A stretch of DNA of 64,000 bases from Octopus bimaculoides. Lineage: Eukaryota. Under the pieces are notes generated by a model. That model did no database searches, had not been told where the DNA came from, and saw nothing but the letters and a program-made list of their open reading frames with translations. Where the stretch lies: the NCBI RefSeq assembly GCF_001194135.2, contig NC_068999.1, positions 1,602,821-1,666,820 of the forward strand. The letters are read 5' to 3'. Shown here in pieces: positions 4,648 to 54,329 of the stretch; position 1 is the first letter of the stretch; each line of letters opens with the position of its first letter. The translations under genes and the position numbers were made by a program.

Positions 4648-5061
4648 TAAGGCGGCGAACTGGCAGAATCGTTAGCACGACGGGCGAAATGCTTAGCGGT
4701 ATTTCGTCTGCCGTTACGTTCTGAGTTGAAATTCTGCCGAGGTCGACTTTGCCTTTCATCCTTTCTGGGTCGAAAATTTAAGTACCAGTTACGCAGTGGG
4801 GTCGATGTAATCGACTTAATCCCTTTGTGTCCCCTATGTTTAGCCCCTTGTGGGCACTAAAGATATAAGAAACGTTAGCACGCCGGACGAAAAACTTGGT
4901 ATTTTGTCTGTCTTTACGTTCTGATTTCAAATTCTGCCGAGGTCGATTTGCCTTTCATCCTTTCGAGGTCGATAAATTAAGTACCAGTCGCGTACTGAGG
5001 TCGATCTAATCGACTGGCTCCCTCATCAAAAATTTCGTACCTTGTGCCTAGAGTAGAAAAG
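4648..5061 (+). mobile_element. Dimeric tRNA-derived SINE (family A), full length with TSD
   Basis: Two tandem monomers each with GTTCTGAGTT(C/G)AAATTC(C/T)GCCGAGGTCGA(C)TTTGCCTTTCATCCTTTC..GGTCGA body; 15-bp TSD aatat(c/a)ttcacttcg at 4633-4647 and 5062-5076; homologous copies at 41032 and 49371. Confidence 0.92.
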
Positions 5062-7169: not shown

Positions 7170-7241
7170 CAAGACAGGCAATCTCTGAGGCAATCATTGG
7201 CACCAGAAATGCTACACAGAAAACGGGCTTCCATAGAAATG
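7170..7241 (+). CDS. Candidate coding exon ([24 protein letters not shown])
   Basis: CTAAT branch-like site then aacag acceptor; ATG|gtaatg donor; exactly 72 nt, phase 0-0, non-repetitive composition. Confidence 0.35.
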
Positions 7242-7799
7242 GTAATGAATGTTTCAAGACAGAATTTTTTGCCTTGAGGAATAAATGTCAATTTATGAGA
7301 GATGAAGAATACAACTTGCCAACGCACAGCCTCCGCTTGCTTTTACAAATTCATGGCTTTCCTATTCGAAGATTTTCTCTGTAGTTTATTTAGGTATTTG
7401 GAATTTATTTGTGAGGTTTATTTTAGGCTTTTTGTTTGTTACTTTTTTTCTTTCTTTTCTTATAGCTTGTCACGTTTGTCTTTTAAAATTTTGTCTGTGT
7501 ATTTATTTAAGGTTATTCTTATGGATATTCGTAATACTATCGTTATCATTATGAAATGTCATCACCGCCATCACCGTCATCATCGTCAGCATCATCGTCG
7601 TCATCGTCGTCGTCGTCGTCGTCGTCATTCTCATCATCATCATCTTAATATGCATTTTTAAATGCAAGTATTAGTTACATCTAGGATAACACGCATGAAT
7701 TTATCCATAACTTTATAATTAGTATTATTTATTACTATTGTTATTGTTATTTATTATTTATTATTTATTATTATTGCTATTATTATTTATTATTTATTG

Positions 7800-8267: not shown

Positions 8268-9594
8268 CGAAGATCTCGCAACTGCTGGACGTGTCCTTGG
8301 CGGAGGTTTGAGCTCTCTGAGTGCTCTTGTTATTATCATTATTATTATTATCATTATTATTATTATCATTATTATTAATTTCCTAGTTTTTAGTATTAAT
8401 CTTGCTGTTGCACTTGTTGTCGTTGGAGTTTATGTTAATGCCGATGTTGCTGCTGATGGTGTTGATGATGGAATTTTACTAAAACCTGTTTACGTTGATA
8501 AGAAACCGATTTGAAATTAAATCACATAATGAAGATGACACGTCAGGTATAATGATATATACATACATTCATACCCACTTGCACACACATACATACATTC
8601 AAACATACATACATTCACACATATATACATACATACAGACAAGCATGCATACACACACATGCATACATACCTATATGTGTGTGTATGTGTGTGTTCTGCG
8701 TGTGCGTGTATATATGTTTGTGTGTGTGCGCGCACAGGTGTGTGTGCATATATGTGTGCATGTGTGTGTTCTGCGTGTGCATGCTTATATATTTATATGT
8801 GTGTCTGCCTATGTTTGAGATTGTGTATATGTGTGTGTGTGTGTATATGTGTCTGTATGTATGTGTATATATACGTTTGTATATATGTGAGTATATGTGT
8901 GTTCTACCTGTGCGTTTATGTATATGATGTATACGTGTGTGTGAGTTTTACGTGTGAGTGTATGTATATGTATATGTGTGTGTATATATGTGTTTGTGTG
9001 TGTGTGTGATTATGCAACGATCTAGACACGTACGCATGGTGCTGAACAGAAGTGGAAATCGTGCTTATATTTTCCTTTGAGTAAACACAATATGTTCGAT
9101 ATGTGCAAGAAAAAAATTTACGAGATAAGATATGTACTTTTACTCCCTATTAAAAAATGTATACAACCGCATATGCAAAACATGAATATATTCACAATTA
9201 TCAACAGACACATATAAAACACTACCTATACCTATATACACATGTGTGTGTATTTATACATGTCTGTATGTATATGGATACTTCTTTCTATGTGTGTGTG
9301 TGTATACATGTATATATATATATATCTGTAGCAATATGTTTATAATGTATGTCTGGTTTCCTGTATAGGGGGGTGTGTGTGTCAGTGTGTGTAAGTGTGT
9401 GATTGTGTGTGTGTTATGACAATATTTGTTTTGTTTATAGCGATACAATAAAACCAGACAGGTAACGCTGAGATTAAATTATCAGTAAATAAATAAAATA
9501 AAATAAAATTGAAGCAGAAATTGAAACCCAAGAAATAGCAAGATTTAGAGAGATTTCGAAAATAATCTCTCAATACACAGATATATGCGAAAAT

Positions 9595-11579: not shown

Positions 11580-11913
11580 TCACATTGGCTCCTGCCCTCA
11601 GCTCCTTTCACGTCTCCCATTTATTGATTACGCACATCTACACTGCATGGCCGTCTATACTTCAACACTTGCTCACCACCTCTATACATATACACCCACC
11701 ACACGATGACCGACACATAATTCATCTGTTCTGCTCATTTCCAGGCATGAACACACAACCACTTGTTCCTCTCTTTCGAGCTTCTCTGCTTAGAACAACA
11801 TTGTCATCTGGTTTCTAATCCAACTCATTGCCCGGTTTTTATTTTGCCCACTAAATATTTATCTGCTTCTCTCTTTTTTCTGATGAAGGACTAACTTCCG
11901 CAACGTTAGACAT
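11580..11913 (+). mobile_element. Probable PLE pseudo-LTR relic ending in a hammerhead-like core
   Basis: Pyrimidine-rich unique segment ending CTGATGA-A-GGA ctaact TCC-GCAA-CGTT (11880-11907); GAAA box mutated to GCAA. Confidence 0.4.
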
Positions 11914-12613
11914 AATCGCTGACCGTTGAAGAGTTAAGCTTATAGCGCATTTGTTAAATTTCGTTCTTCTCATAATGTCACGTTTACGTTCAATATATCT
12001 GTCCTATACGTATATATATATGTATGTGTGCTTTTATATTTGCGAATATGTATATGTATACATGGTTTTTGCGTGTGTGTAAATTGGGATGGAAAATAGG
12101 GGAAAAAAGTGTGGAAGGAAACAGAGAAAGTAAAAAGAAGAAAAGTAGAATGCTAAACAATGCTGACACTTATGTATACATTATTACAGAAAAAATCTTG
12201 TATGGAAGCACAAAGAAAAAAACTAAAAAAATTCAATCGGAAGAATACAGAAAAATAACTAAACAGGAAGTCATAAAAGACAAAAAGAGGTAGATTGAGG
12301 GGACAGGTAAACAATACGAGAGAGGAAAGAAGATAGGTGTAAAGCAAGGAGGGAAAGAGAAAGAGAGAGAAAGCAAGGATAGGAGTGATTATGTATATGT
12401 GTATATATATATATATATAAATGAGCGATTATTCATATATATATATATATATATATGAGTGATTATTCATATATGTATGTATATATATATATATATATAT
12501 ATATGGAGAGAGAGAGAGAGAGATAGAATACGAAGAAATTATTTTAGTAGTCATATATATCGGTTGAAGTTCGTTGCACACAAATGGTTTGGTTTCATCA
12601 TCTGACAGAAAAT

Positions 12614-12682
<69 letters not shown>
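12614..12682. repeat. (TAG)n microsatellite
   Basis: About 23 perfect units. Confidence 0.97.
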
Positions 12683-12684
<2 letters not shown>

Positions 12685-12954
12685 ATAGTTATTGTTGGTG
12701 GTGGAGTAACTATTTGCTTGTTTTTTTTAGTACTCTTTACTAGTGGTGTGTCAAGAACTTTTTTCTTTTCACAATTTGGGGAGATCTATTATGAAACGGA
12801 AGATGAAGGGAACAAGCAAACAAAAATCCAATTCTATATTTATATGCTCACACGTACATACACAGATACATAAATCAATACATATACAAATATACACACA
12901 CAAACACACATAGATGACGAGACAGACTGATAAAAAATGTGTGTGTGTGTATGA

Positions 12955-13005
<51 letters not shown>

Positions 13006-13402
13006 NNNNNNNNNNNNNNNNNNNNNNNNNNNNNNNNNNNNNNNNNNNNNNNNNNNNNNNNNNNNNNNNNNNNNNNNNNNNNNNNNNNNNNNNNNNNNNN
13101 NNNNNNNNNNNNNNNNNNNNNNNNNNNNNNNNNNNNNNNNNNNNNNNNNATATATATATGTAAATATATACATATGTACATATAAAGATATATAGAGATA
13201 TGTATGTACGTACGTATGGATGGATGGATGGATGGATGGACGGATGTATGGATGTGGTTTAGATAAACTGTTGGTGGTAGTCCTCTTACGGCCGTTTCAG
13301 AGGCACAGTAATCCATAAATTTTAAGGGTGTTTTTACTCCAAAAATTGGATATGCCACCTTCATCACAGCGAGTATATTTATCAGAATTCACATTTCGTA
13401 CA

Positions 13403-13515
13403 GTGTTGTAATGAAGTGTTTTGCTCAAGAATATAACGCATCACCTGGCCCAGGATTCGAAACCACGATCTTACGTTCACGACTTCATGCGACACCCTAA
13501 CCATTGCGCTACGAG
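13403..13515 (-). mobile_element. tRNA-headed CORE-like SINE 5' fragment (family C)
   Basis: Minus strand: GTAGCGCAATGGTTAGG (A box) ... GGTTTCGAATCC (B box) ... TTCTTGAGCAAAACACTTCA. Confidence 0.75.
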
Positions 13516-14441
13516 TATTCATTTGTATAACACATATAACTCAAGAAAAAAGTAAGCCCAATCACACAAGGATAGACACTCACACCCATAACAATAAAAG
13601 CTTACACACACACATACACACACACACATATAAACACACACACATACACACAAACACGCGCTCGCGCGCTCACACGCACACATGCCCCACTGAAGCAATA
13701 AATAAATGATACAGACATTCCCAAATTATTGAGAATGTGTATAATCCTGAACACTTACGCATCCATATTTACGTGTGTATTTTAGTGTATGAGTACGTGT
13801 GAATCAGTATGAATATATGGTCTATGTGTATATATATTTGATATTGCATGAATTTGCGTATGAAACTTTAAAAAGTGAAAAAGAAAACAACTCTGGGAAA
13901 TAACTATAAGCTTACATTTTTTGAAATCTTATGAGGATGTATTTGGAAAAAATAGTTTATTTTTCTTCTATTTTATAAATATAAAGGCAAAAATGTTCTG
14001 TTATATAATAGAATAATATTCTATTACCTTTAGAAAAGACTCCTTATATAATAGGATAATATCCACCTAAAATATTAGAATAGCATTAGTATTTAACACT
14101 GTTTTCATAATATTATAAGAATATTATTCGTACATCAGACGTTTTCAAAGAAATAAGTATTTATAATTTATTTAAACAGTGGCGTAATGAATGTCATATA
14201 CATACTATTATAAATTCATATTATTTCCCCTGTGAAATGCAGCCATAAAAAAATAGAATATAGCAGTAACTAATTGCAACATTCAATGAGAAAAGAGGTA
14301 GATAGAAATTTATTAATATCATATGTCTCAAGTATATGGGCGTTCATAAAGAAGCATGTACAACAATAGACATATATCTTGGTATATTCGATACCGTGTG
14401 CATGGTATACTCAAAATGATGTTCACTATATGTATGTAAAC

Positions 14442-14498
<57 letters not shown>

Positions 14499-14565
14499 GT
14501 ATTTGGATTTGCTTTGCAAGATTCTTTATGTGAGTTCGTGTGTTGAAGCATATTCTATTGTGTCC

Positions 14566-14696
14566 GGGGAGAGTCATTCTCTTTTAGTGCCTTATAATTT
14601 AACACACTCACCGGTAAAATTTCTGTTCATTTCCTTCTTTATTTTTACCTGTGAGTGTGTTAAATTATAAGGAATCAAAAGAGAATGACTCTTCCC
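14566..14696. repeat. Hairpin-forming inverted repeat (54-bp arms, 23-nt loop)
   Basis: 14566-14619 vs reverse complement of 14643-14696: 49/54 identical, no gaps. Confidence 0.92.
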
Positions 14697-14713
14697 AAAC
14701 AAAACAGTGTGCC

Positions 14714-14757
<44 letters not shown>

Positions 14758-15474
14758 CATACTGGGACTTCAAGCATTGTTTGGAGGTAATGAGTGACAT
14801 TGTATTTTTTGCAAGTGTTGCAGGAAATTGGTAAAGTGTGCGTGGATTTTCCGTCCAATACCGTTTCATTGTACATATTAAACAAGAGTCAAACGACTGC
14901 ATTTTTCAAATATATATGTGTAAGTTTACACAGATCCTATTATGAGTGAACGAAATATTTTAATACGAACAAATTCAATCTGAACATGAGTTATCTCCTC
15001 GTATCTGTTCATCATAACTCACAGCATACCACCAAACAACGTTTCAAACCCAGGAAAGTCTAATCAAAAATCATGTAGCATATTTAACATGGAGACAGAT
15101 TATTAAAATTCTTCAGCGGTACTTTTGACAATTGGGAATTTTTCGCATGAAATTAATGATAGAATTGTTAATCCACAAATAAAAAAAAATGTTTATTCAC
15201 CAAATGTGCTGTTGAGCATTCATTGTCTCAACAGCTCATCAATATCTTATTCACGTGCGTGTCTGTACGAATGAGTGTGTATGCATGTATACATATAAAT
15301 AAATGTATATAAACATATATGCGTGTGTGCGTGTGTGTGTGTGTCTGTGAGTGTATATGTGTGTACATATATATATGTAAATATATGTGTGTCCGTATAT
15401 AAATGCCTATAGCTTAATTATATATATATATGGACGCGTGTGTGTGTGTGTCTGTATGTTCGTGAGCATCAGTT

Positions 15475-15511
<37 letters not shown>

Positions 15512-16869
15512 AAACGTATGCGTGTTATGTTCCGCAAATATTTTAATTTAATATTAGAAAGTGGAATTCCTTTAAACAGTTAATTTCCGTTAGGAAGTAC
15601 AACAATGAAAAACGAATTATTTTATTTATTTATTTCTTCACTCATTTTTATATAATTAATTTGTTCTTCCCACAATTTAGCATTACTGCATTATTATTTT
15701 CATCATAAAATATTCATTACATATACATATACATACGTATGTATGTATGTATGTATGTATGTATGAATGAGTGTGTATGTGTGTTTGTGTATATATATGT
15801 GGGTGTGTGTCTATATGTATATGTGTGTATATATATACACACACATATACATATATGTATATTATATGTGTGTGTGTATATATATATAAAGTATGTATAT
15901 ATTTATATATATGTATGTGTATATACAATTAAATATGTGATTATATATATCTGTATATATATGTGTGTGTGTGTGTGAATGAATGTTTGTGTATGCAATT
16001 ATTTATACATGTATCATACGTATGAATGCATATATGAATGTATACATATGCACACACACACACACACATTTGTATATGGTTCAAATGTACAAAAGAAAAA
16101 AATAAGCTATTATATACAAATAGAATAACTACGTCTGCTCACACGTATTTAATATATATACCTGCGTGAGTATGTATAAATAGACTTACTCGTATCTATT
16201 TATACCACGTATATGTGTATGTGTGTGTGTCTGCATGGATATGTGTGTGTGTGTGTGTGATTGTGTGTGTGTGTGTATACATTAGATGTATAAGTTTAAT
16301 AGAATAGTTTTTATTTATTTGATACCATTTTCTCAATGAATTAGTCTTTCCTAAGATATAGCGAAATATCCAAAGGTGCAATAAAAGAACAAATAGGGAC
16401 CACTTCTACTGCACGTTTGAAGCTTGATTTTTCATGGAGGCCATAGATTGATGTTTATTATTCATATAAAGATTATGCAAGTCGCAATAAATTTTAACAT
16501 GTAGCAATCTACTTAATGTGGTTCATCTTGGTTGACCTATTTGCAATGACTACATCCGTTCTCGCTACAGATTTAGTTTTACGTTTAAATGTTCTTAAAA
16601 TTCATTCACGTTTTCCCTCTGTGGAAGGAACAAAGTTGCAATTTTTGCATAAATATTATAATGTACCATACTTTATTCAGGGTTAGAAAGATAATGAGGA
16701 ACATTATTATTACCTCCTCTTTCAAACTACCTGTTGGAGTTCAATAGACTTCTGTATGCTGATAACCAGTCAGTTGGTGTTGAGGGCAGGGATTTTTTAT
16801 ATCTAGTTCAAATGTACAAAAGACAAAAAGAAAAAAAAAATCACATGACAGAGACAGGTGAGGAAATGG

Positions 16870-16985
16870 CAGAGACGGTGTATTAATTTTGACGCTCATA
16901 AAAATTCGAAAACCCATTGACGTTTCGAGACTGCGCTCGTCAGCAGAAAGGAATGACGAAAGAAAACGGAGAGAGAAAACTAATG
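16870..16985 (-). mobile_element. Interspersed repeat with hammerhead-like core (same family as 54330)
   Basis: tttt(g/a)acgctc...cgtttcgag.ct.cgctc.tca.cagaaaggaa...gagagagaaaac shared with 54330-54420; minus strand CTGACGA gcgcagtctc GAAA CGTC. Confidence 0.6.
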
Positions 16986-17299
16986 TGCCTGGATTAACGG
17001 TTTCGTATGTCGAATAGACTGGAAGGAAGTGGTTGAATGGAAGGGTCATGTGTATGTGTTTGTGCATCAAGTTTATGCGACCATATTGAGTGTATTTATG
17101 CGTGGTTATGTAAATGAGCACGTGTGTGTGTTGGGATTAACGGAGGCAGAAACATGGTGGCTTTCTTTTCCAATGAAATGGATGTTTGAACAGGAGGGGA
17201 GTAACTGATTTGGGCCGTTGCTTTTAGAAAGCAAATGGCTTCAACAGATGCCGCAGGGAGTCTCGTACGGCATCTGTCAACAGGTCCGCCAATTTTCTA

Positions 17300-17415
17300 C
17301 CCAGGATTTACATGCTTATCAGCATAGAAAGGGAAATGTTGCGTGTGGTGGGATATGAGCCCAAAACACAAAATGTCGGATTAAATGCGGCGAAGCACTC
17401 TAACAAACACTCTAC
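17300..17415 (-). mobile_element. Degenerate SINE family A head
   Basis: Plus strand aagggaaatgttgcgtgtggtgggatatgagcccaaaacac...aaatgcggcgaagcac...taac..actctaccgcc is a decayed reverse complement of the family A 5' half. Confidence 0.5.
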
Positions 17416-19037
17416 CGCCTTTAATAGATAGCAGCCATTTTGAAATACTGAACTATAATGCATCACCCATCGCGAATCAACACAAAAATGTTTATATATC
17501 ACTGTGTGTGTGTATGTATGTATGTATGTATGTATGTATGTATGTATGTATGTATGCGTGCATGTGCGTGTATTTATTTATTTAAAGGAAACCGAGAAAT
17601 ATTCAAGACAATCTGCGGAAATATAAAAAAACTACCAAATGAAAGAACGGAAGAATTTTGTCTGACGGTTCAGCCTGGTTTGTGATTTGATATTGGAAGA
17701 TTTCAAGGCTTCTTTCTAAGTTGCAATATTTTAGAGACACATGAAAAGATATCTGTTCCGATCGATGCTGTATTATGTACGAAAGATCAAATGGTAAAGA
17801 AGAAGGATGGATATTTTTAATGGTATATTTATGATTTCATATCAAACAAACATTGAAATCGAGTCAATAGTTTTCTGAGAATATAGAAAGATGAGAAGAA
17901 ATGGAGAAAAAGACCCTGAAAAAAAAACGCGGAATAAAATTGAATACTTATATATAGAGAGAGAGAAAAATAAATGTGTGGGTGAATGAATGATTGTAAG
18001 TATTTACTTTTGTACATATGCGTGAGAACGTGTGTATGCGAGCATGTGTATATATATGCATATATGCAGATAGCTAAATATGTGTCTGTCTGTGTACGTA
18101 TATATATATCCATACATACATTCATATAAATATATATATNNNNNNNNNNNNNNNNNNNNNNNNNNNNNNNNNNNNNNNNNNNNNNNNNNNNNNNNNNNNN
18201 NNNNNNNNNNNNNNNNNNNNNNNNNNNNNNNNNNNNNNNNNNNNNNNNNNNNNNNNNNNNNNNNNNNNNNNNNNNNNNNNNNNNNNNNNNNNNNNNNNNN
18301 NNNNNNNNNNNNNNNNNNNNNNNNNNNNNNNNNNNNNNNNNNNNNNNNNNNNNNNNNNNNNNNNNNNNNNNNNNNNNNNNNNNNNNNNNNNNNNNNNNNN
18401 NNNNNNNNNNNNNNNNNNNNNNNNNNNNNNNNNNNNNNNNNNNNNNNNNNNNNNNNNNNNNNNNNNNNNNNNNNNNNNNNNNNNNNNNNNNNNNNNNNNN
18501 NNNNNNNNNNNNNNNNNNNNNNNNNNNNNNNNNNNNNNNNNNNNNNNNNNNNNNNNNNNNNNNNNNNNNNNNNNNNNNNNNNNNNNNNNNNNNNNNNNNN
18601 NNNNNNNNNNNNNNNNNNNNNNNNNNNNNNNNNNNNNNNNNNNNNNNNNNNNNNNNNNNNNNNNNNNNNNNNNNNNNNNNNNNNNNNNNNNNNNNNNNNN
18701 NNNNNNNNNNNNNNNNNNNNNNNNNNNNNNNNNNNNNNNNNNNNNNNNNNNNNNNNNNNNNNNNNNNNNNNNNNNNNNNNNNNNNNNNNNNNNNNNNNNN
18801 NNNNNNNNNNNNNNNNNNNNNNNNNNNNNNNNNNNNNNNNNNNNNNNNNNNNNNNNNNNNNNNNNNNNNNNNNNNNNNNNNNNNNNNNNNNNNNNNNNNN
18901 NNNNNNNNNNNNNNNNNNNNNNNNNNNNNNNNNNNNNNNNNNNNNNNNNNNNNNNNNNNNNNNNNNNNNNNNNNNNNNNNNNNNNNNNNNNNNNNNNNNN
19001 NNNNNNNNNNNNNNNNNNNNNNNNNNNNNNNNNNNNN

Positions 19038-41031: not shown

Positions 41032-41237
41032 TTTTCTACTCTAGGCACAGGGCCCGAAATTTGGTGGGAGGAGGCCAATCGATTAGATCGACCCCAGCTG
41101 GTACTTAATTTATCGACCCCGAAAGGATGAAAGGCAAAATCGACCTCGGCGAAATTTGAACTCAGAATATAAAGACAGACGAAACGCCGTTAAGCATTTC
41201 GCCCGGCGTCCTAACGCTTCTGCCAGCTCGCCGCCTT
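41032..41237 (-). mobile_element. SINE family A monomer, full length with TSD
   Basis: Well-conserved copy; 16-bp TSD atcgca(t/c)aacatattc at 41016-41031 and 41238-41253. Confidence 0.93.
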
Positions 41238-46348: not shown

Positions 46349-49300
46349 GCGTGTGTACGGGTGTGCTTATTATATAGAAATGCGGGTGTATATGAATATT
46401 ATGAGTTTATTGTTGTGTTTTTACATGATTATATACGTATACCATTTCATCATCATCTTCAACATCATCATCGTAAGTATCAGACACCTTATCATCAATT
46501 TCATGTTAATCATCATTTTCTAGACTCATTTCAACATGTACCACACTTACACTCACACACCGCTACTCTCATCCATGTACATATACTTCAGTACAGCCTC
46601 ATTTCCTCGCTTCTCTTGCATAGATATACGTATATCTCATATACTTTTTTTTAACACCGACTGAATTCTATGCATTCCATACGGAATATACGGGACCCGA
46701 TGTAGAAATTTTTGCTTATATGTCTACATAGTGGATATATCTATGACTGTATCTGCATATTGAATGTAGTTGTCTATATAACCTATGGATTTATTTTCGC
46801 TGATAATTGCCTATTACATTTATTTTCTTTATAGCCTATACATCCTATAAATATTTATGCTAATCCATTTTTTTAATCTCCTATATACTTTTATTGCGAT
46901 AGTTGTCAGTTACATTTATCTTATATGTAGCTTCTTTATTTACGACGGCAGTTGCCTATTGCTTGTACTTTTGTATTTGGCCAATATATGTACTTATATT
47001 GACAATTATCCGTTGCATACAGTTTTGCTTACAGCATATACATTCAATTATGAATTAAAAGCCTGACACCTTTAGTAAATTCCATTTTTATAACCGATGC
47101 ATTTAACCCCCGCCGACTCAGTATAGCTTCAAATAGAAACCACAAATGAATACATCACGTTATTTTAAGCAACGGCAAAACAGACTACATATTGAATTCC
47201 TACAATAAATACATGGAATGATGGAATCTAAGAAAGTGTACTTTATTGCAGCCTCCATGAAGAAATAGCTACCACATGAATGTATACATCCTAATAAATA
47301 AATTTTTAAATATTTAGTTCATGAAGGTCGTTGGTGGTTCTTAACAGCCACGTTTACTAAACAGCTTAGGAAAGAGACTGAAGGCAGAAATAACGTAGCT
47401 ACACTACAATATAATGTATTCAATAAGCCATTATTTCCGAGAATACAGCAAAAATAATTTCAAAGACAAGAAACTTTTGCCAGTAGACAGTGTTTCTTTA
47501 TATTCAAAAGACTATATTTTTTGGTCAAACATCTCAACAGAAGAACAGAAGACATTAGAACAGGAAAATACAAGTTATGTCTAGGGTGAGCAAATAGTAA
47601 AGAGTAAATCACCAAAAGTGGAATAAATTGATTTTAATGAGTAAGAAATCTGACGTTTCGGAGGTGAACAATTCATCAGAGTGTCATAAGTTGTTTATAT
47701 TTGCTGGTAGATAATTAGATTAGAAGTTGATGAAGATGAAAAGAAATTTCTAATGAAATCTAGTAGAGTATATAAGTGGTAGGAGAGATTTTCTACATTG
47801 TTGCGCAACCTGCTAGAAACAGCAGCCTAACCTCCCTCGGTTTATTCTCTGTCGCTTTTAAAGAACACATTGCATAATACATACAAAGAAATACATATCC
47901 GTTTAAAACAGACAATCACAGATAAAATACTATGCTTCATAATTTTCTGTGATCATGGGCTGAATAACGTTTTCAACAACAGCAACATGAACCAAGCGAA
48001 TTTTGAACTAAGATCGCAGAGTAAGAAACCTAACGCTACCATTTCAATTTAGTCTGCTTCTCTATCGTTCCTTCTTTATGCTAAATCCTTAAAACTTCAC
48101 GTTTCCATTTTTCATTTCCACACAAATTGAAATATCATTATAACTAACAATATCGCACGATTACAAAATAAATCAAGAAGATTATGTGAGGATAAATGTG
48201 ACATTATGCTATGATAAATGCAGCATTGTTCTTGTATCATTACAACGCTTTCCAAAATAATCCTCTAAAACTAATAACGTTGCAACTAACTTCATATCGC
48301 TCTTTGATAAGAAAAAAAAAAGAAACAGCAGTAAATTTATTAGTCACGGAAACCAAAGCAACATTTTTAACCCTTTGCCATTACAATATGCCATTTATAT
48401 ATCATATTATAAATTATGTCTCAGTTATGCTGCAAAGGCGGATTTTTTTTCTAAAAATATGTTTTCAATACGATGCACGTATTTTTATTTCATTTTATCG
48501 AACAGGGTTCCATGTTAAAACTATTCCAATAATCGAAATTGAAAAGAAATGAGTGCGACAATGATATTTGAGTTTGGAAGTAAATTTATTTTATTTGTAT
48601 TTTTAAACGTATTGTGACAAAGTGGTGGAATATTCTTTCTTCCTCGATTTCATTGAGTGAATAACCTTAATGGTTTCAAGGGCAAAGTGACATTGGTATG
48701 GTTTGAACGTAGGTCGTAGATTGGTTCGTTTTTGTACTATGTCTGTCATTTTACCCACAGCTACGAGCGAATGAGCTTTTAAGCAATCATTTACCCAACT
48801 AGATTTAGCAGCCAAAATTGTCTCCAAACTTAAGAAGTGGAAATGACGCATTATATAATGTAGAGATACTTAGGCTGGAGAGATCGAGGCTTAGCTGGAG
48901 CTAAATTAAAACGAGACAACAATAAGAACAAGATCATCATCTAGGACAACCAAACAGTTTCTGTGTCTTCCATTGTGTATTTAGATGAAGATTGTATGAA
49001 AGAGAGCACTCGAGGCATTTCTCAGATTAAAGATATGTCGAGTCTGAATTTCTATATGTTTATATCTGTAAGGGAATGGAGAGACTGACCGCGGCCCGCA
49101 GTTTTGACGAGTCACATTGAAGAAGCGGATGAAATGAGATGTTTTGAGTGTGATAAAAATTATAAACTAAGAGAGAAAAGCCACCAGAAGTAAGAAGTTC
49201 CTAGGATCGATATAAGAAATGGATTCCTATTTAAATGAAAGCCCAAACTACTGTTGTAACTTCTATAGTTAGAAGATTGAGAAACAAGCAATTTGGAAAC

Positions 49301-49370
49301 TAGATTTATATTTATAGAATGTTGGTGAGTGAGTGTCAAACAGAAGTCTATTTCATATTGTGTATGTTTG

Positions 49371-49746
49371 CACGTCGGACGAAATGCTTAGCGGTATTTC
49401 GTCTGCTGTTACGTTCTGAGTTCAAATTCCACCGAGGTCGACTTTGCCTTTCATCCTTTAGGGGTCGATAAATTAAGTACCAGTTACGCACTGGGGTCGA
49501 TGTAATCGACTTAATCCCTTTGTCTGTCCTTGTTTGTCCCCTCTGTGTTTAGCCCCTTGTGGGCAATAAAGAAATAGGTATTTCGTCTGTCTTTACATTC
49601 TGAGTTCAAATTCCACCGAGGTAGACTTTGCCTTTCATCCTTTTGGGGTCGATAAGTTTAGTACCAGTTGCGTACTGGGGCCCATCTAATCAACTGCCTC
49701 CCTCCCCAAAAGTTTCGCGCCTTGTGCCTAGATTAGAAAAGAATAT
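49371..49746 (+). mobile_element. Dimeric SINE family A, 5'-truncated
   Basis: Same two-monomer structure and ...cttgtgcctaga(t/g)tagaaaagaatat end as the 4648 copy. Confidence 0.92.
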
Positions 49747-50594
49747 GTGTGTTTGGCTGGCTGCAACACCGATCCGCATGTAGAGCACTGCAATCTTGAT
49801 TGCTCATGAGTTTTGTAAATGGTCATTTATAGCTCAGTAGTGAAATATTGTCCGGCTTAAAACAGAAAGGTTAGTCCGGGGAATAATAAATGTTTGGTAA
49901 AGTTATATTTGACAGCGACCCTATTGTGATATTCTCTGCGAACGCCATCAAGATTCAACAAAGCAGTGAGAAATGTAGTAACCGAGGCAATATTTGAAAC
50001 GACGCGACGCGCACGAGCGGTATTTAAAAGCCCAGCAGAATCAGATTGCAAAGTACTATTATTTTCCAAGATTACAATTCAAATTAGATAGAATTTTTTT
50101 TTTTTTTTTTTCAAAGAAACTCCGTCCAAGTGTTTTCGAAATATTCTGCCTCCCCTTCCCCCTCTCTCACTGACTCGTACGTCTGCTTTGAGAAGACCCA
50201 CGTGACAGACACCCCCTCTCTATCTCTTTGTTTGTGAAAAATTGTTGCTACTCTCGTTCCACTTTCTGACTCGAACAGAAGCAATCCCATAATTCCTGAG
50301 TTAACCAGCTTACATGGTGGAATAACCTGGCGGGAAGTTTGAATTCTTTTTTTATTCAAAGCATCCGTTTGCACTATTATATTTTTGGAATATTCTGAAA
50401 ACAAAAATATTATGNNNNNNNNNNNNNNNNNNNNNNNNNNNNNNNNNNNNNNNNNNNNNNNNNNNNNNNNNNNNNNNNNNNNNNNNNNNNNNNNNNNNNN
50501 NNNNNNNNNNNNNNNNNNNNNNNNNNNNNNNNNNNNNNNNNNNNNNNNNTTGTGTGTTCGCGTGTGTTCTTATATAAAAGTAGCCTTTTTCGAA

Positions 50595-51612
50595 ATGAGT
50601 GTTATAAACAATATTTTGAGAAATAGTTTTTCGAAAAGAGACTTCGATGGAAAACAATTAATTATAAACGGTGAGAGACCAACACCGAATTTACCTAATT
50701 TGCAAAGCTACAACAAGAAATTCACGAAACAATTTCAGGTTAATTTGAATGAAAAGAAAAAAATGGTTAACTGGAAGTGCTACACTTAATAAATTATTCT
50801 GTTGGCTTTGTTTACTTTTTTGCTTAGAAAAGAATGTTTGGAATGATAAAGGCTATGATGCTTTAAATAATTTACATATGGCTATGCTAAAGCACTAGCG
50901 TTCTCAAAGGCGTATAAAATCTTTGATAGATCTTAAAATATTCGGGAATGTTCGCATAGACTTACAATTAGATGCTTGTAAAAATCAAAGTATACAACAT
51001 CATAAGGAGAAAGACGAAACAGATCCATTCTGCAACGATTGATCGATGTTATTTATTTTTTTAGGCCTCCGGGAATTATCGTTTTGGGGTCATTTTGAAT
51101 CTGAAGGCTCGTGGAAATTATAAATATGACCAAAAAATGGAAAGTCATCTAGATACAGCTTCTATCTTCAGCGGTCTCTCAAACACAATTCAAAATGACT
51201 TCATCGATGCAATTCATAAAGTTATGTTGAATGAGATGCAAAAGGAAAAAAACTGAGCAAGCTAAGTTTGTTTCTATTCCTGTTGATGAGACATCTGATG
51301 TCTCAGCATATTCACAACCGTCAACAGTTTTACGTTATGTTACAGAAGACTGTGTGACGAAAGAACGATTGATCGGTTTTAGTGATGTTAGTGCAGATCG
51401 CTCTGCAAATGCTTTATCTGAACATGTTTTTAAATGCATTGAGACGTGGCAGTGTGGAAAGAAATTGATTGCACAGAAATATGATGGTGCCGCTACAATT
51501 GCAGGACAATTAAATGGGTTACAGGCAAAAGTAAGACAGAATTATGAATGTACGATCTTTATTCATTGTTGTGCCCATATCCTAAATTTAGTTCTTTCAC
51601 AATCATGTTCTA
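50595..51612 (+). pseudogene. Decayed hAT-superfamily transposase (TTF-type Zn finger + DUF4371-like + N-part of DDE domain), 3'-truncated
   Basis: Across frameshifts and stops: MSVINNIL..RPTPNL..KWLTGSATLNKLFCWLCLLF..VWNDKGY..KH*RS..FGNVRID..ILQRLIDVIYFLGLRELSFWGH..SNTIQNDFIDAI..VDETSDVS..VLRYV..KERLIGF..AQKYDGAA..NGLQAKV..FIHCCAHILNLVL. DETSD, YDGA and CxxH motifs are typical of hAT. Confidence 0.92.
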
Positions 51613-51963
51613 TCCCATCCTGCGTTGTATTTGCGCTTGCACATCATAGATTCATCTATTTCTACGATGTGCCCAAGTCCACCAATTTGGTAGGGGTTAC
51701 GCAAACGATAATTGCTTGTAATGTCCCTCATGTACTGATACCATTGAACAACAGTAGATTTTGAAAGACCGACTTTTTAAAGGACTCTTTACCAAAAACA
51801 GGTGTATAATTTATTTACTTTGTTTAAAAGAAATTATTTACTTTGTTCAGAAAAACCCTCATACATGTTTTGTGCATGACGCGCACTCGCGCTAGGTAGT
51901 CGTAGGATCGACTAGTCACGACTCACTAGCGCGGATGCGCGAGTGCGCGCACCGGAACCACTC
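51606..51963 (-). mobile_element. Merlin (IS1016/ISXO2-like, DDE_Tnp_IS1595) DNA transposon 5' fragment
   Basis: Stop-free minus-strand frame 51776-51606: KVGLSKSTVVQWYQYMRDITSNYRLRNPYQIGGLGHIVEIDESMMCKRKYNAG, matching the Merlin signature TVVDW..CRD...IGG.G.IVEIDES...KRKYNRG. The GC-rich palindromic segment 51880-51963 is the likely 5' end; that boundary is inferred. Confidence 0.85.
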
Positions 51964-51998
51964 TTCTTGAATAGTACCTAAAACGGACTGGGTACATT

Positions 51999-52063
<65 letters not shown>

Positions 52064-52114
52064 TTTCAATAAAGTTAACACATTGTCTGTTTTTTATGTA
52101 TGTATGTATGTATA

Positions 52115-52400
52115 TAAAACGACCAGCGGGTGAAATAATTCAAAGTACTTCTAATTTACAATATTACAAAATAGTGAGAAAACGTCGAGCGATATTTACA
52201 ACATCCCAGCAGGATAAAGATGGGAAAGAACTTTTATTCTACAGTAATACAAAGCTGTGAGAAGTATATGGCGATATATAAAACTCCCAGCAGGTTAAAA
52301 TAGTAAAGTAGTTTTATTTTACAATAATACGAAACAGTGAGAAACCTAGAGCGATATCGAAAAACTATTAGCAACTTAAAACATTAAAAGTACACTTGGT
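52115..52400. repeat. ~81-bp degenerate minisatellite, about 3.5 copies
   Basis: Units start at 52157, 52240 and 52320: TACA(A/G)TA(A/T)TAC..A...GTGAGAA....(A/G)GCGATAT..A..AAC....AGCA...TAAA...AAAG; partial unit upstream. Confidence 0.8.
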
Positions 52401-52807
52401 CTATGATCAGCTGATTGTCTTCATTTGAATTTCTCATACGTAATAGAAAAGCATGAATGTCATAAAATCGTTATTGCTCTTCTCCTACGTTGAGACAAGT
52501 TTTGCAATCACTGAATATTGTACAAGCTTCAATATGACTTAGCTAATAACAAAAGCAAATGGCTTTCTTCCTGAATCGTAACCGTCTATAGATGCAGAGA
52601 TTTCCTACAATTTCAATCCGATTTCAGTAATTGCATTATTCTTGAGGGTGGGAGTCGCTTCAAAATAGTCTCTACTTCAGAGGTTAATCCCGTTGTGCTG
52701 TATCTTAGACATTCAAGTGTCTTCTAAAATAACCGAGATTCTACCAAGGCCTCGAGAGTTAAGTCTGTCAGACGGAAATCGATATACTCTATGTATTTAT
52801 TCATCCC

Positions 52808-53006
52808 CTTAACGTAAGGGGATTCAGCATGACACAGCATATGACAAGGCTGGCCCTTGTAAATTACAGGTATAACTCATTTTTGCCATCTGAGTAGACT
52901 GGACGAGCGTGAAATGAAGTATCTTGCTCAAGGGCACAACGTAGCGCCGGGTGTGAAACTCACAACCTTAGGATCATGAGCCGAATAACCTTACCACTGA
53001 GCCATG
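52808..53006 (-). mobile_element. SINE family C (tRNA head + CORE-like box + tail)
   Basis: Minus strand catggctcagtggtaagg (A box)...gttgtgagtttcacaccc (B box)...ttgtgcccttgagcaagatacttcatttcacg...aagggccagccttgtca. Confidence 0.88.
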
Positions 53007-53483
53007 AGCTTTCGGCCATAAAACAACATTTAGTAGGACCAACTACTGCTACTAAATCAACCTCTGCTACTATGGCAAGTAGCTTTCAACAGCAGTAAAT
53101 ATATTGGTATATAACAATGGCAGTAACTCTATCGATATGTAGTGCGGGAACATGTTTAACCCTCAGCCTTACCATCCGCCGGTGAAATAAGAAAATATTG
53201 ATTGCAGTCTATGTAATATCTGATATCGATTATCTAATGTTTATTAAACACTACGCACACACGGAAACACATGCATACGTATAGACATAGATACACACAT
53301 ACATAGATAAAAATATACAAAAAAAATACATGTAGATACACACACACACACACACACGCATACATATAGGGAGAAAGATGCACGCAGACACAGAGACGAT
53401 TTTTGAATTCGCCTTTGTATGGTTGTATGTACACACACAGATACACACACACAGATACACACACACAGACACGCATATATCTA

Positions 53484-53532
<49 letters not shown>

Positions 53533-53575
53533 GTGTGTGTGTGTGTGTATACAAAGAGAGAGCAATAGAGAGTTA

Positions 53576-53985
53576 GGTGCAGGCGTGGCTGCCTGGTAAG
53601 TATGGTTCCAGTTTCAGCCCGAGTGCGTAGCACCATGTCACCTCGGGTAACTCTTCTTCCATAGGCACCAGGCAGACCAAAGCCTTGTGAGTGGATTTGT
53701 TATACGGGAACTGGGAAAGCACATCTATTATAAATACATATACATGTGTGTGTATCTGTATGTGTGTGTCTGTAGATGTGTATGTATATTAGTCTTTGTG
53801 TTTGTGTCTGACTTCTTGCACAGTTTGACAACCTGTGTTGGTTTGTTTACGTCAGCCGTAACGTCGCGGTTCATCCAAAAGAGACCGCTACAATAAGTGC
53901 CAGCCTTAAAAAGAAAAAGTTAAATATTAGAGTCGATTTGTTCGACTGATCCTTCGAGGTCGCACCCCAGCATGGTTGAAGACTG
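53576..53985 (+). mobile_element. SINE family B, near full length
   Basis: ggcgtggctgcctggtaag...gaccaaagccttgtgagtggattt...(TG/TA)n...ttgacaacc...gcggttc...gtcgatttgttcgact...ccagcatgg. Confidence 0.88.
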
Positions 53986-54104
53986 TGAGGAAGAAGAGTA
54001 AAATGTGTGTTAAAAAATATTCCAGAGTGTAAAGATCTCCATACAAAGTAGTAACTGATAGCTAGATGTAGACAATAAACTTAATCTGAACATATGCAGA
54101 TTGC

Positions 54105-54136
<32 letters not shown>

Positions 54137-54329
54137 NNNNNNNNNNNNNNNNNNNNNNNNNNNNNNNNNNNNNNNNNNNNNNNNNNNNNNNNNNNNNNNN
54201 NNNNNNNNNNNNNNNNNNNNNNNNNNNNNNNNNNNNNNNNNNNNNNNNNNNNNNTATATATATAGTGAGAATTTACAAAAAAAATTAAAGGACGAAGACG
54301 GGTGTGTAAATAACAAACAGATGTTACTA

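Follow-up and report, generated by a model that had tools for sequence, protein, structure and literature searches.

There is ample precedent, in wheat among others (PMC7156093), for genomic deletions that begin in one truncated transposon and end in a different one, with short repeats at the joint; such deletions arise by illegitimate recombination or microhomology-mediated end joining. Pack-TIR and Ds-like internally deleted elements (PMC8277862; PMC3814204), which form when gap filling involves template switching, are another closely comparable system. The two kinds of DNA transposon that meet at the locus described here are themselves familiar: hAT and Merlin families both figure in a recent repeat annotation of Octopus vulgaris (PMC13282606), and Merlins, the eukaryotic relatives of bacterial IS1595/IS1016, have been described with terminal inverted repeats (TIRs) of 24–462 bp that start with GG, and with target duplications of 8–9 bp (PMC8101967).

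The locus lies in a stretch of 64,000 nucleotides of Octopus bimaculoides DNA, the whole of which is called the window below. Like the wheat-type indels (PMC7156093), it has both breakpoints in transposon bodies, with a few shared bases and without filler; unlike them, its undeleted allele was unobserved. With the Pack-TIR and Ds-like elements (PMC8277862; PMC3814204) it shares microhomology at the switch point and a foreign segment at an internal breakpoint, but it lacks the second hAT end, which those elements retain.

The window is AT-rich (34% G+C), rich in microsatellites and interrupted by 22 runs of N. Microsatellites, (TA)n or (CA)n, border most of these gaps, and the gaps probably represent unassembled simple repeats rather than large missing segments. 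A dispersed SINE-like repeat of ~200 bp occurs three times in the window (4654–5023, 41081–41232 and 49366–49703) and is also found near hAT in L001 (7966–8196) and L004 (11401–11627), at 83–92% identity. Rfam and tRNA scans of 49000–54137 gave sub-threshold low-complexity matches only, and no tRNA. The features of the locus are collected in Table 1.

Table 1. Features at and around the hAT–Merlin joint (positions in the window)
Feature	Positions	Strand	Remarks
hAT 5′ subterminal region, terminal repeat degenerate or truncated	50033–50414	+	5′ ends of O. vulgaris L004 and L005 align here
Assembly gap within the hAT copy	50415–50549		135 N
hAT (DUF4371/ZMYM1-like) transposase pseudogene	50550–51611	+	~first 340 codons; Pfam DUF4371
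ORF across the joint, 177 aa	51231–51764	+	residues 1–127 hAT; 128–177 in-register antisense of Merlin
Breakpoint microhomology	51608–51611		TCT (51609–51611) is a hAT Ser codon and, on the opposite strand, the Merlin Arg codon AGA
Merlin/IS1595-type transposase fragment	51609–51785	-	~59 codons; end of the helix-turn-helix region and first catalytic Asp (EIDES)
Unassigned bases	51786–51801		16 bases
TIR-element terminal region	51802–51978	-	AT-rich subterminal repeats (tttatttactttgtttaaaa) and a long GC-rich inverted-repeat arm
Internal hairpin in the terminal-repeat arm	51880–51950		DNA fold -26.9 kcal/mol, z -3.1

To place the joint at base resolution, the window was compared with five other octopus hAT copies, one from O. 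bimaculoides (L001) and four from O. vulgaris (L004–L007). At the breakpoint, marked here by a stroke, these copies read ..TCATGCTCT/GCTATGAAAG.. and the window reads ..TCATGTTCT/ATCCCATCC..; the bases immediately around it are TGCTCT/GCTATG in the hAT copies. In a longer context, the five copies read ..TCACAATCATGCTCT/GCTATGAAAGAATGC.., still coding for ..SQSCSAMKECKIFF.., and the window reads ..TCACAATCATGTTCT/ATCCCATCCTGCG... All five carry on as hAT beyond the breakpoint, whereas the window departs after TCT, and every hAT DNA alignment with the window ends at 51611. On the Merlin side, relatives and gene models read ..KRKYNGGWDR/EDKNRFLVFV.., and the Merlin of the window stops at WDR. The initial annotation had followed Merlin as far as the KRKYN stretch. 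This stretch is indeed Merlin, but so is the WDR that comes after it (51617–51609), where Merlin overlaps hAT: TCT, the last hAT codon, reads on the opposite strand as the Arg codon AGA.

Since the hAT TCT and the Merlin WDR meet at the same bases, the two parents overlap by 3–4 bases (TCT/CTCT). Three of these (TCT) are observed, without filler; the fourth would be a C at 51608 in both parents, as the hAT consensus has it and as either Glu codon would give it in Merlin, which would bring the overlap to CTCT. Both breakpoints fall inside coding sequence, away from the element termini, and the joint is therefore not an insertion junction. Insertion of a Merlin into hAT at 51611 was accordingly ruled out: the joint cuts the Merlin ORF midway, and no terminus is present there. 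The comparison supports a tail-to-tail joint of hAT and Merlin, each of them 3′-truncated.

Transposases of the hAT superfamily have an RNase-H-like DDE core into which a further domain is inserted, here the DUF4371 region with its DETSD, YDGAA and CxxH motifs. The hAT partner contains DETSD, YDGAA and CCAHxLNL, and its C-terminal end reads ..LSQSCS. Frameshifts and stops break its frame before 51231. A pseudo-protein stitched across the frameshifts (50595–51611) matched Pfam DUF4371 at 36.2 bits (cutoff 32.1); residues 15–96 of the 177-aa ORF matched the same domain with an E-value of 5.7e-07 and 30.1 bits, slightly below the 32.1-bit cutoff. Of the two Pfam families that the initial annotation had named for the two strands, DUF4371 was thus recovered (in the stitched protein, at 36.2 bits), and DDE_Tnp_IS1595 was left unmatched by the Merlin piece alone. 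The proteins closest to the hAT part of the ORF are DUF4371/ZMYM1-like models from O. vulgaris and O. bimaculoides (78–88% identity). At the DNA level, the window copy is 90.4% identical to L001 over 50561–51611 and 85–88% identical to the O. vulgaris copies. Its last 52 bases are 96–98% identical to the five octopus copies, compared with 85–90% in the long alignments.

The window copy can be assigned in this way to an octopus hAT family of 3.68 kb, in the DUF4371/ZMYM1/ZBED5-FAM200-like group, with which it shares 85–90% DNA identity. It differs from the family in consisting of only the first ~44% of the element, with a degenerate 5′ repeat and frameshifts, and without the 3′ end. The copy ends at 51611; it lacks the third catalytic residue, whose place is past the breakpoint, and also the C-terminal dimerisation domain (PF05699). 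Similarity to the family begins near 50033, where the window reads CAGCAGAATCAG.. in place of the terminal repeat CAGGGGCGTGCACTCTCAG.. of the family. The window contains no exact copy of the family TIR, and no hAT 3′ sequence was found in its readable sequence. With the 5′ repeat degenerate and the 3′ end missing, the target duplication is unreadable. Two candidates for the missing end were discarded. The segment 52822–52876 matches L001 7131–7182, outside the hAT element; and a hAT 3′ end situated beyond the Merlin segment, which would make the locus a Ds-like element with filler, was rejected for want of any hAT 3′ similarity in the readable window. From its divergence of 10–15% and its frameshifts, the hAT piece is judged to be old, and the Merlin piece is old as well.

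The hAT family itself was defined from O. vulgaris copies. The element is 3,679 bp long (L004 5125–8803), has terminal repeats of 11 bp (CAGGGGCGTGC / GCACGCCACTG) and makes an 8-bp target duplication, which is a perfect ATACATAT in L006 and ATATATAT in L005. An early candidate for the terminal repeat, CAGGTATGCAAGG, was wrong. Two further loci, L002 and L003, were left out when the ends were defined: they are 99.6% identical over 10 kb and, being haplotigs and not independent copies, are uninformative on this point. The family combines DUF4371 with a C-terminal Dimer_Tnp_hAT domain; the latter (PF05699) was found in L006 at 9325–9558 (31.9 bits against a 21.4-bit cutoff) and also in the L002 and L003 gene calls.

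Several features of the individual copies were noted in passing. Microsatellites of the (TA)n type flank all four O. vulgaris copies (L004 5125–8803, L005 4846–7576, L006 6695–10535 and L007 from 9039), a pattern that suggests a preference of the family for TA repeats as targets. Among the copies with listed ORFs, those in L004 and L006 are pseudogenes. The copy in L007 is split by an LTR-type retroelement of ~5.9 kb (11838–17701), whose ORFs encode an intact protease-RT-integrase of 1080 aa and a gag-like protein of 291 aa (DUF7041).

The Merlin partner is encoded on the minus strand, where 51776–51609 reads KVGLSKSTVVQWYQYMRDITSNYRLRNPYQIGGLGHIVEIDESMMCKRKYNAGWDR in a frame open over 51603–51776. 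This peptide is 88% identical to O. bimaculoides models annotated as ‘ISXO2-like transposase’ and 58% identical (E 4e-19) to residues 103–155 of a 301-aa Merlin transposase (P0029). The fragment alone is too short for Pfam and had no match at E ≤ 10; its membership in Merlin therefore rests on its relatives. Those at 82–88% identity carry PF12762 (DDE_Tnp_IS1595), with E-values of 4e-19 in P0014, 2e-14 in P0017 and 4e-07 in P0012, and a profile of the family picks up 9131 relatives. Within the Merlin superfamily, the similarity covers the region from the helix-turn-helix to the first catalytic Asp. It ends at ~51785 (residue ~100 in full-length relatives), and no Merlin N-terminal similarity was found upstream of 51785, either with stops masked or in the other frames. 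The description of this partner as a transposase ‘half’ did not hold up: compared with a full Merlin, there are only ~59 codons, with the first catalytic Asp but without the second and third catalytic residues, without the first ~100 codons and without the other end of the element, and the target duplication is unreadable. No Merlin DNA of this family was found in any of the loci sampled, and look-ups for the DNA that encodes the models P0011 and P0012 gave no record.

Part of the damage to the fragment is common to its relatives. Eleven codons (RGRMPQEMWVF-G, including the conserved WVFGG motif) are missing in frame from the window fragment (51609–51640) and from most of the O. bimaculoides Merlin models among P0011–P0018; they are retained in P0014 and P0017. 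As the loss is common to most of these models, a crippled subfamily appears to have multiplied, presumably by mobilisation in trans. We also noted two predicted proteins, P0020 (1750 aa) and P0021 (1611 aa), with 9–10 consecutive Merlin transposase fragments each, which are probably gene models strung over clusters of Merlin copies.

Adjoining the fragment are 16 bases assigned to neither side (Table 1), where the Merlin copy may have undergone an internal deletion, and then a terminal region whose outer tip, on the minus strand and starting at 51978, reads 5′-GGTACTATTCAAGAAGAG. This region matches, at 87–97%, both arms of a ~215-bp miniature element (MITE) in O. vulgaris (L005 7190–7404); the similarity starts near 51802–51810 and stops exactly at the GG tip (51978). 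The GG start and the long inverted repeat fit the Merlin TIRs described previously (PMC8101967). On this ground, and from its adjacency to the transposase fragment, the terminal region is probably the 5′ end of the same Merlin copy, which would also have lost its first ~100 codons. To the right of 51978, 20 unrelated bases lead to (TA)31 and then to a tandem repeat (52111–52357) with an 83-bp unit in three copies (70% matches). The sequence to the left of hAT (49900–50030) was considered as the other Merlin-type half; it gave only chance matches of 7–10 bases.

How did the two elements come to be joined? The initial annotation had proposed a deletion between two convergent DNA transposons, a proposal supported by the clean joint, the 3–4 bases of microhomology and the position of both breakpoints inside ORFs. 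We consider it likely that the joint, in octopus DNA that is non-coding and rich in repeats, is the one-off scar of a microhomology-mediated deletion between two old insertions of convergent orientation. Repair by end joining is inferred, and so is the following order of events. A hAT (plus strand) and a Merlin (minus strand) would have inserted independently and in convergent orientation, nearby or one in the neighbourhood of the other, and both copies would then have decayed. A double-strand break would later have been repaired by end joining at the 3–4 bases of microhomology (TCT/CTCT). The resulting deletion would have taken half of the hAT and three-quarters of the Merlin ORF, in each case the 3′ part, along with anything between them, and its product would be hAT codon ~340 fused to the antisense of Merlin codon ~155. 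The loss of the first ~100 Merlin codons needs a further rearrangement, so that the history comprised more than one step. This deletion is deduced from a single haplotype, the pre-deletion state not having been seen.

The joint could in principle be an artefact, in which hAT reads were joined during assembly with Merlin reads from elsewhere. The draft assembly is heavily gapped (22 N runs in 64 kb), hAT and Merlin sequences are both multicopy repeats, and other assemblies have no record of either ORF at the joint. Against these points, the nearest gaps (50415–50549 and 54137–54254) are 1.06 kb and 2.5 kb away, the contig between them, which holds the joint, is gap-free, and 3–4 shared bases would be too few for a false join based on k-mers. 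The depth of the joint inside the contig and the shortness of the shared sequence make misassembly unlikely. In addition, the hAT of the window, which differs by 10% from its nearest relative, is a separate copy and not a collapsed consensus. Taken with the points in its favour, a misjoin strikes us as decidedly improbable.

A microhomology of 3–4 bases is also the expected trace of template switching, and a capture of the Pack-TIR kind, in the course of gap filling or of a gap repair that aborted, has to be weighed against the deletion. In such a course, with a break in or at the hAT under repair by copying, the strand being synthesised would leave hAT at ..CTCT, re-anneal by microhomology on a Merlin copy and copy on to the Merlin end. 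Microhomology of this length without filler is the signature reported for captures by animal TIR elements (PMC8277862), and one of the sampled hAT copies gives the idea some substance: in L005, 1,223 bp of hAT interior have been replaced by a MITE with the same GG terminus, without target duplication. Gap-filling products, however, retain both host ends, as L005 does, and in the readable sequence of the window no hAT 3′ part was found, either to the right of the Merlin segment or elsewhere; moreover, unrelated DNA and (TA)31 directly follow its Merlin-type terminus. We therefore regard template-switch capture as rather unlikely at this locus, and retain the microhomology-mediated deletion.

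In the L005 copy, the ~215-bp MITE (7190–7404; OX597818.1, O. vulgaris) has long inverted repeats starting GGTACTATTTAAGAAGAG and sits exactly where the 1,223 bp of hAT are missing, with 10 and 16 unmatched bases at its sides. Capture by gap filling could explain it, as could an insertion with a later deletion; the hAT copy of L005 resembles a genuine Pack-TIR/Ds-like element.

The ORF across the joint had been described in the initial annotation, and its main properties were confirmed: it reads hAT and then Merlin antisense without a stop, with the end of hAT at 51611, and a stretch of ~160 bases, 51603–51764, is open on both strands. It is the longest non-repetitive ORF of the window, in which no protein-coding host gene was recognised. 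Its last 50 codons are Merlin antisense, up to a stop that lies opposite the only TCA (Ser) codon of the fragment. This tail has no Pfam match and no homologue. No protein crossing the joint was found in a database of 5.8 billion proteins, the best coverage being at most 71% of the ORF and confined to the hAT part. Exact-product look-ups with the 177-aa ORF and with the 42-aa ORF of the minus strand showed neither to be on record in public assemblies.

Stops are often lacking from the antisense frame in register with a coding stretch, which accounts for the passage of the ORF across the joint. When the bases were shuffled, the tail stayed open in 5.8% of cases; when the Merlin peptide was re-coded synonymously at genome composition, it did so in 7.4%. 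A chance of about 6–7% is unremarkable in a genome with thousands of transposon junctions. The ORF looks like a chance by-product of the joint, with no sign of being a gene. An antisense ORF over a Merlin transposase, likewise judged to be a chance product, has been noted earlier (PMC8101967).

The initial annotation had also raised the prospect of a new chimeric non-autonomous element, should the composite be multicopy. No second copy of the joint or of either element was found in the window, and no second copy of the joint in the five sampled hAT loci. Patterns for the joint, for the GG terminal repeat and for the Merlin ORF had no match in metagenome and viral contigs, a result of little weight as such collections are unlikely to hold octopus DNA. 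The joint is likely to be single-copy. On one side the composite is bounded by the degenerate 5′ end of the hAT, on the other by a GG terminus of Merlin type; as these ends come from different superfamilies, neither transposase would have a matched pair to act on. With the hAT 3′ end missing, the hAT 5′ repeat degenerate and the only good terminus of Merlin type, the composite as read from its sequence should be unable to move. Across the window, the five hAT loci, the database proteins and the metagenome contigs, we thus found neither multiple sites with a shared joint nor matched ends, and the suggestion of a new chimeric element is unsupported.

A broader form of the same suggestion would see in the composite a fusion gene, a new chimeric non-autonomous element present in many copies, or a source of small RNAs against both families that arise by convergent transcription. 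The 177-aa ORF over the joint and the ~160 bases open on both strands speak for it, as does the multicopy state of both parent families in octopus (PMC13282606). It is opposed by the lack of any other copy of the joint in the window, the five hAT loci or the database proteins, by mismatched ends that offer no transposase a matched pair, by a hAT frame already broken upstream of the ATG of the ORF, and by an ORF tail without homologue or domain. We hold this reading to be highly improbable. The chance that the composite is not unique appears equally slight, be it as a low-copy chimeric repeat (produced by segmental duplication or by a mismatch-tolerant transposase) or as a convergently transcribed small-RNA locus against both families. 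If the composite were not unique, L005 would point to recurrent hAT–Merlin recombination in octopus genomes.

The parent families are of known kinds, and the joint, which we attribute to a microhomology-mediated deletion, is an ordinary product of transposon decay. Its significance beyond annotation is small: it offers a base-resolved case of transposon remains trimmed and fused by end joining at small homologies, in the setting of a large, repeat-rich cephalopod genome. Such fusions yield long meaningless ORFs, which gene predictors may call. For repeat curation in octopus, the useful outcomes are the ends of the 3.68-kb hAT family (CAGGGGCGTGC) with its 8-bp target duplication and apparent preference for (TA)n, a GG-tipped MITE that is probably the non-autonomous derivative of the Merlin family, and a Merlin subfamily with an in-frame loss of 11 codons.
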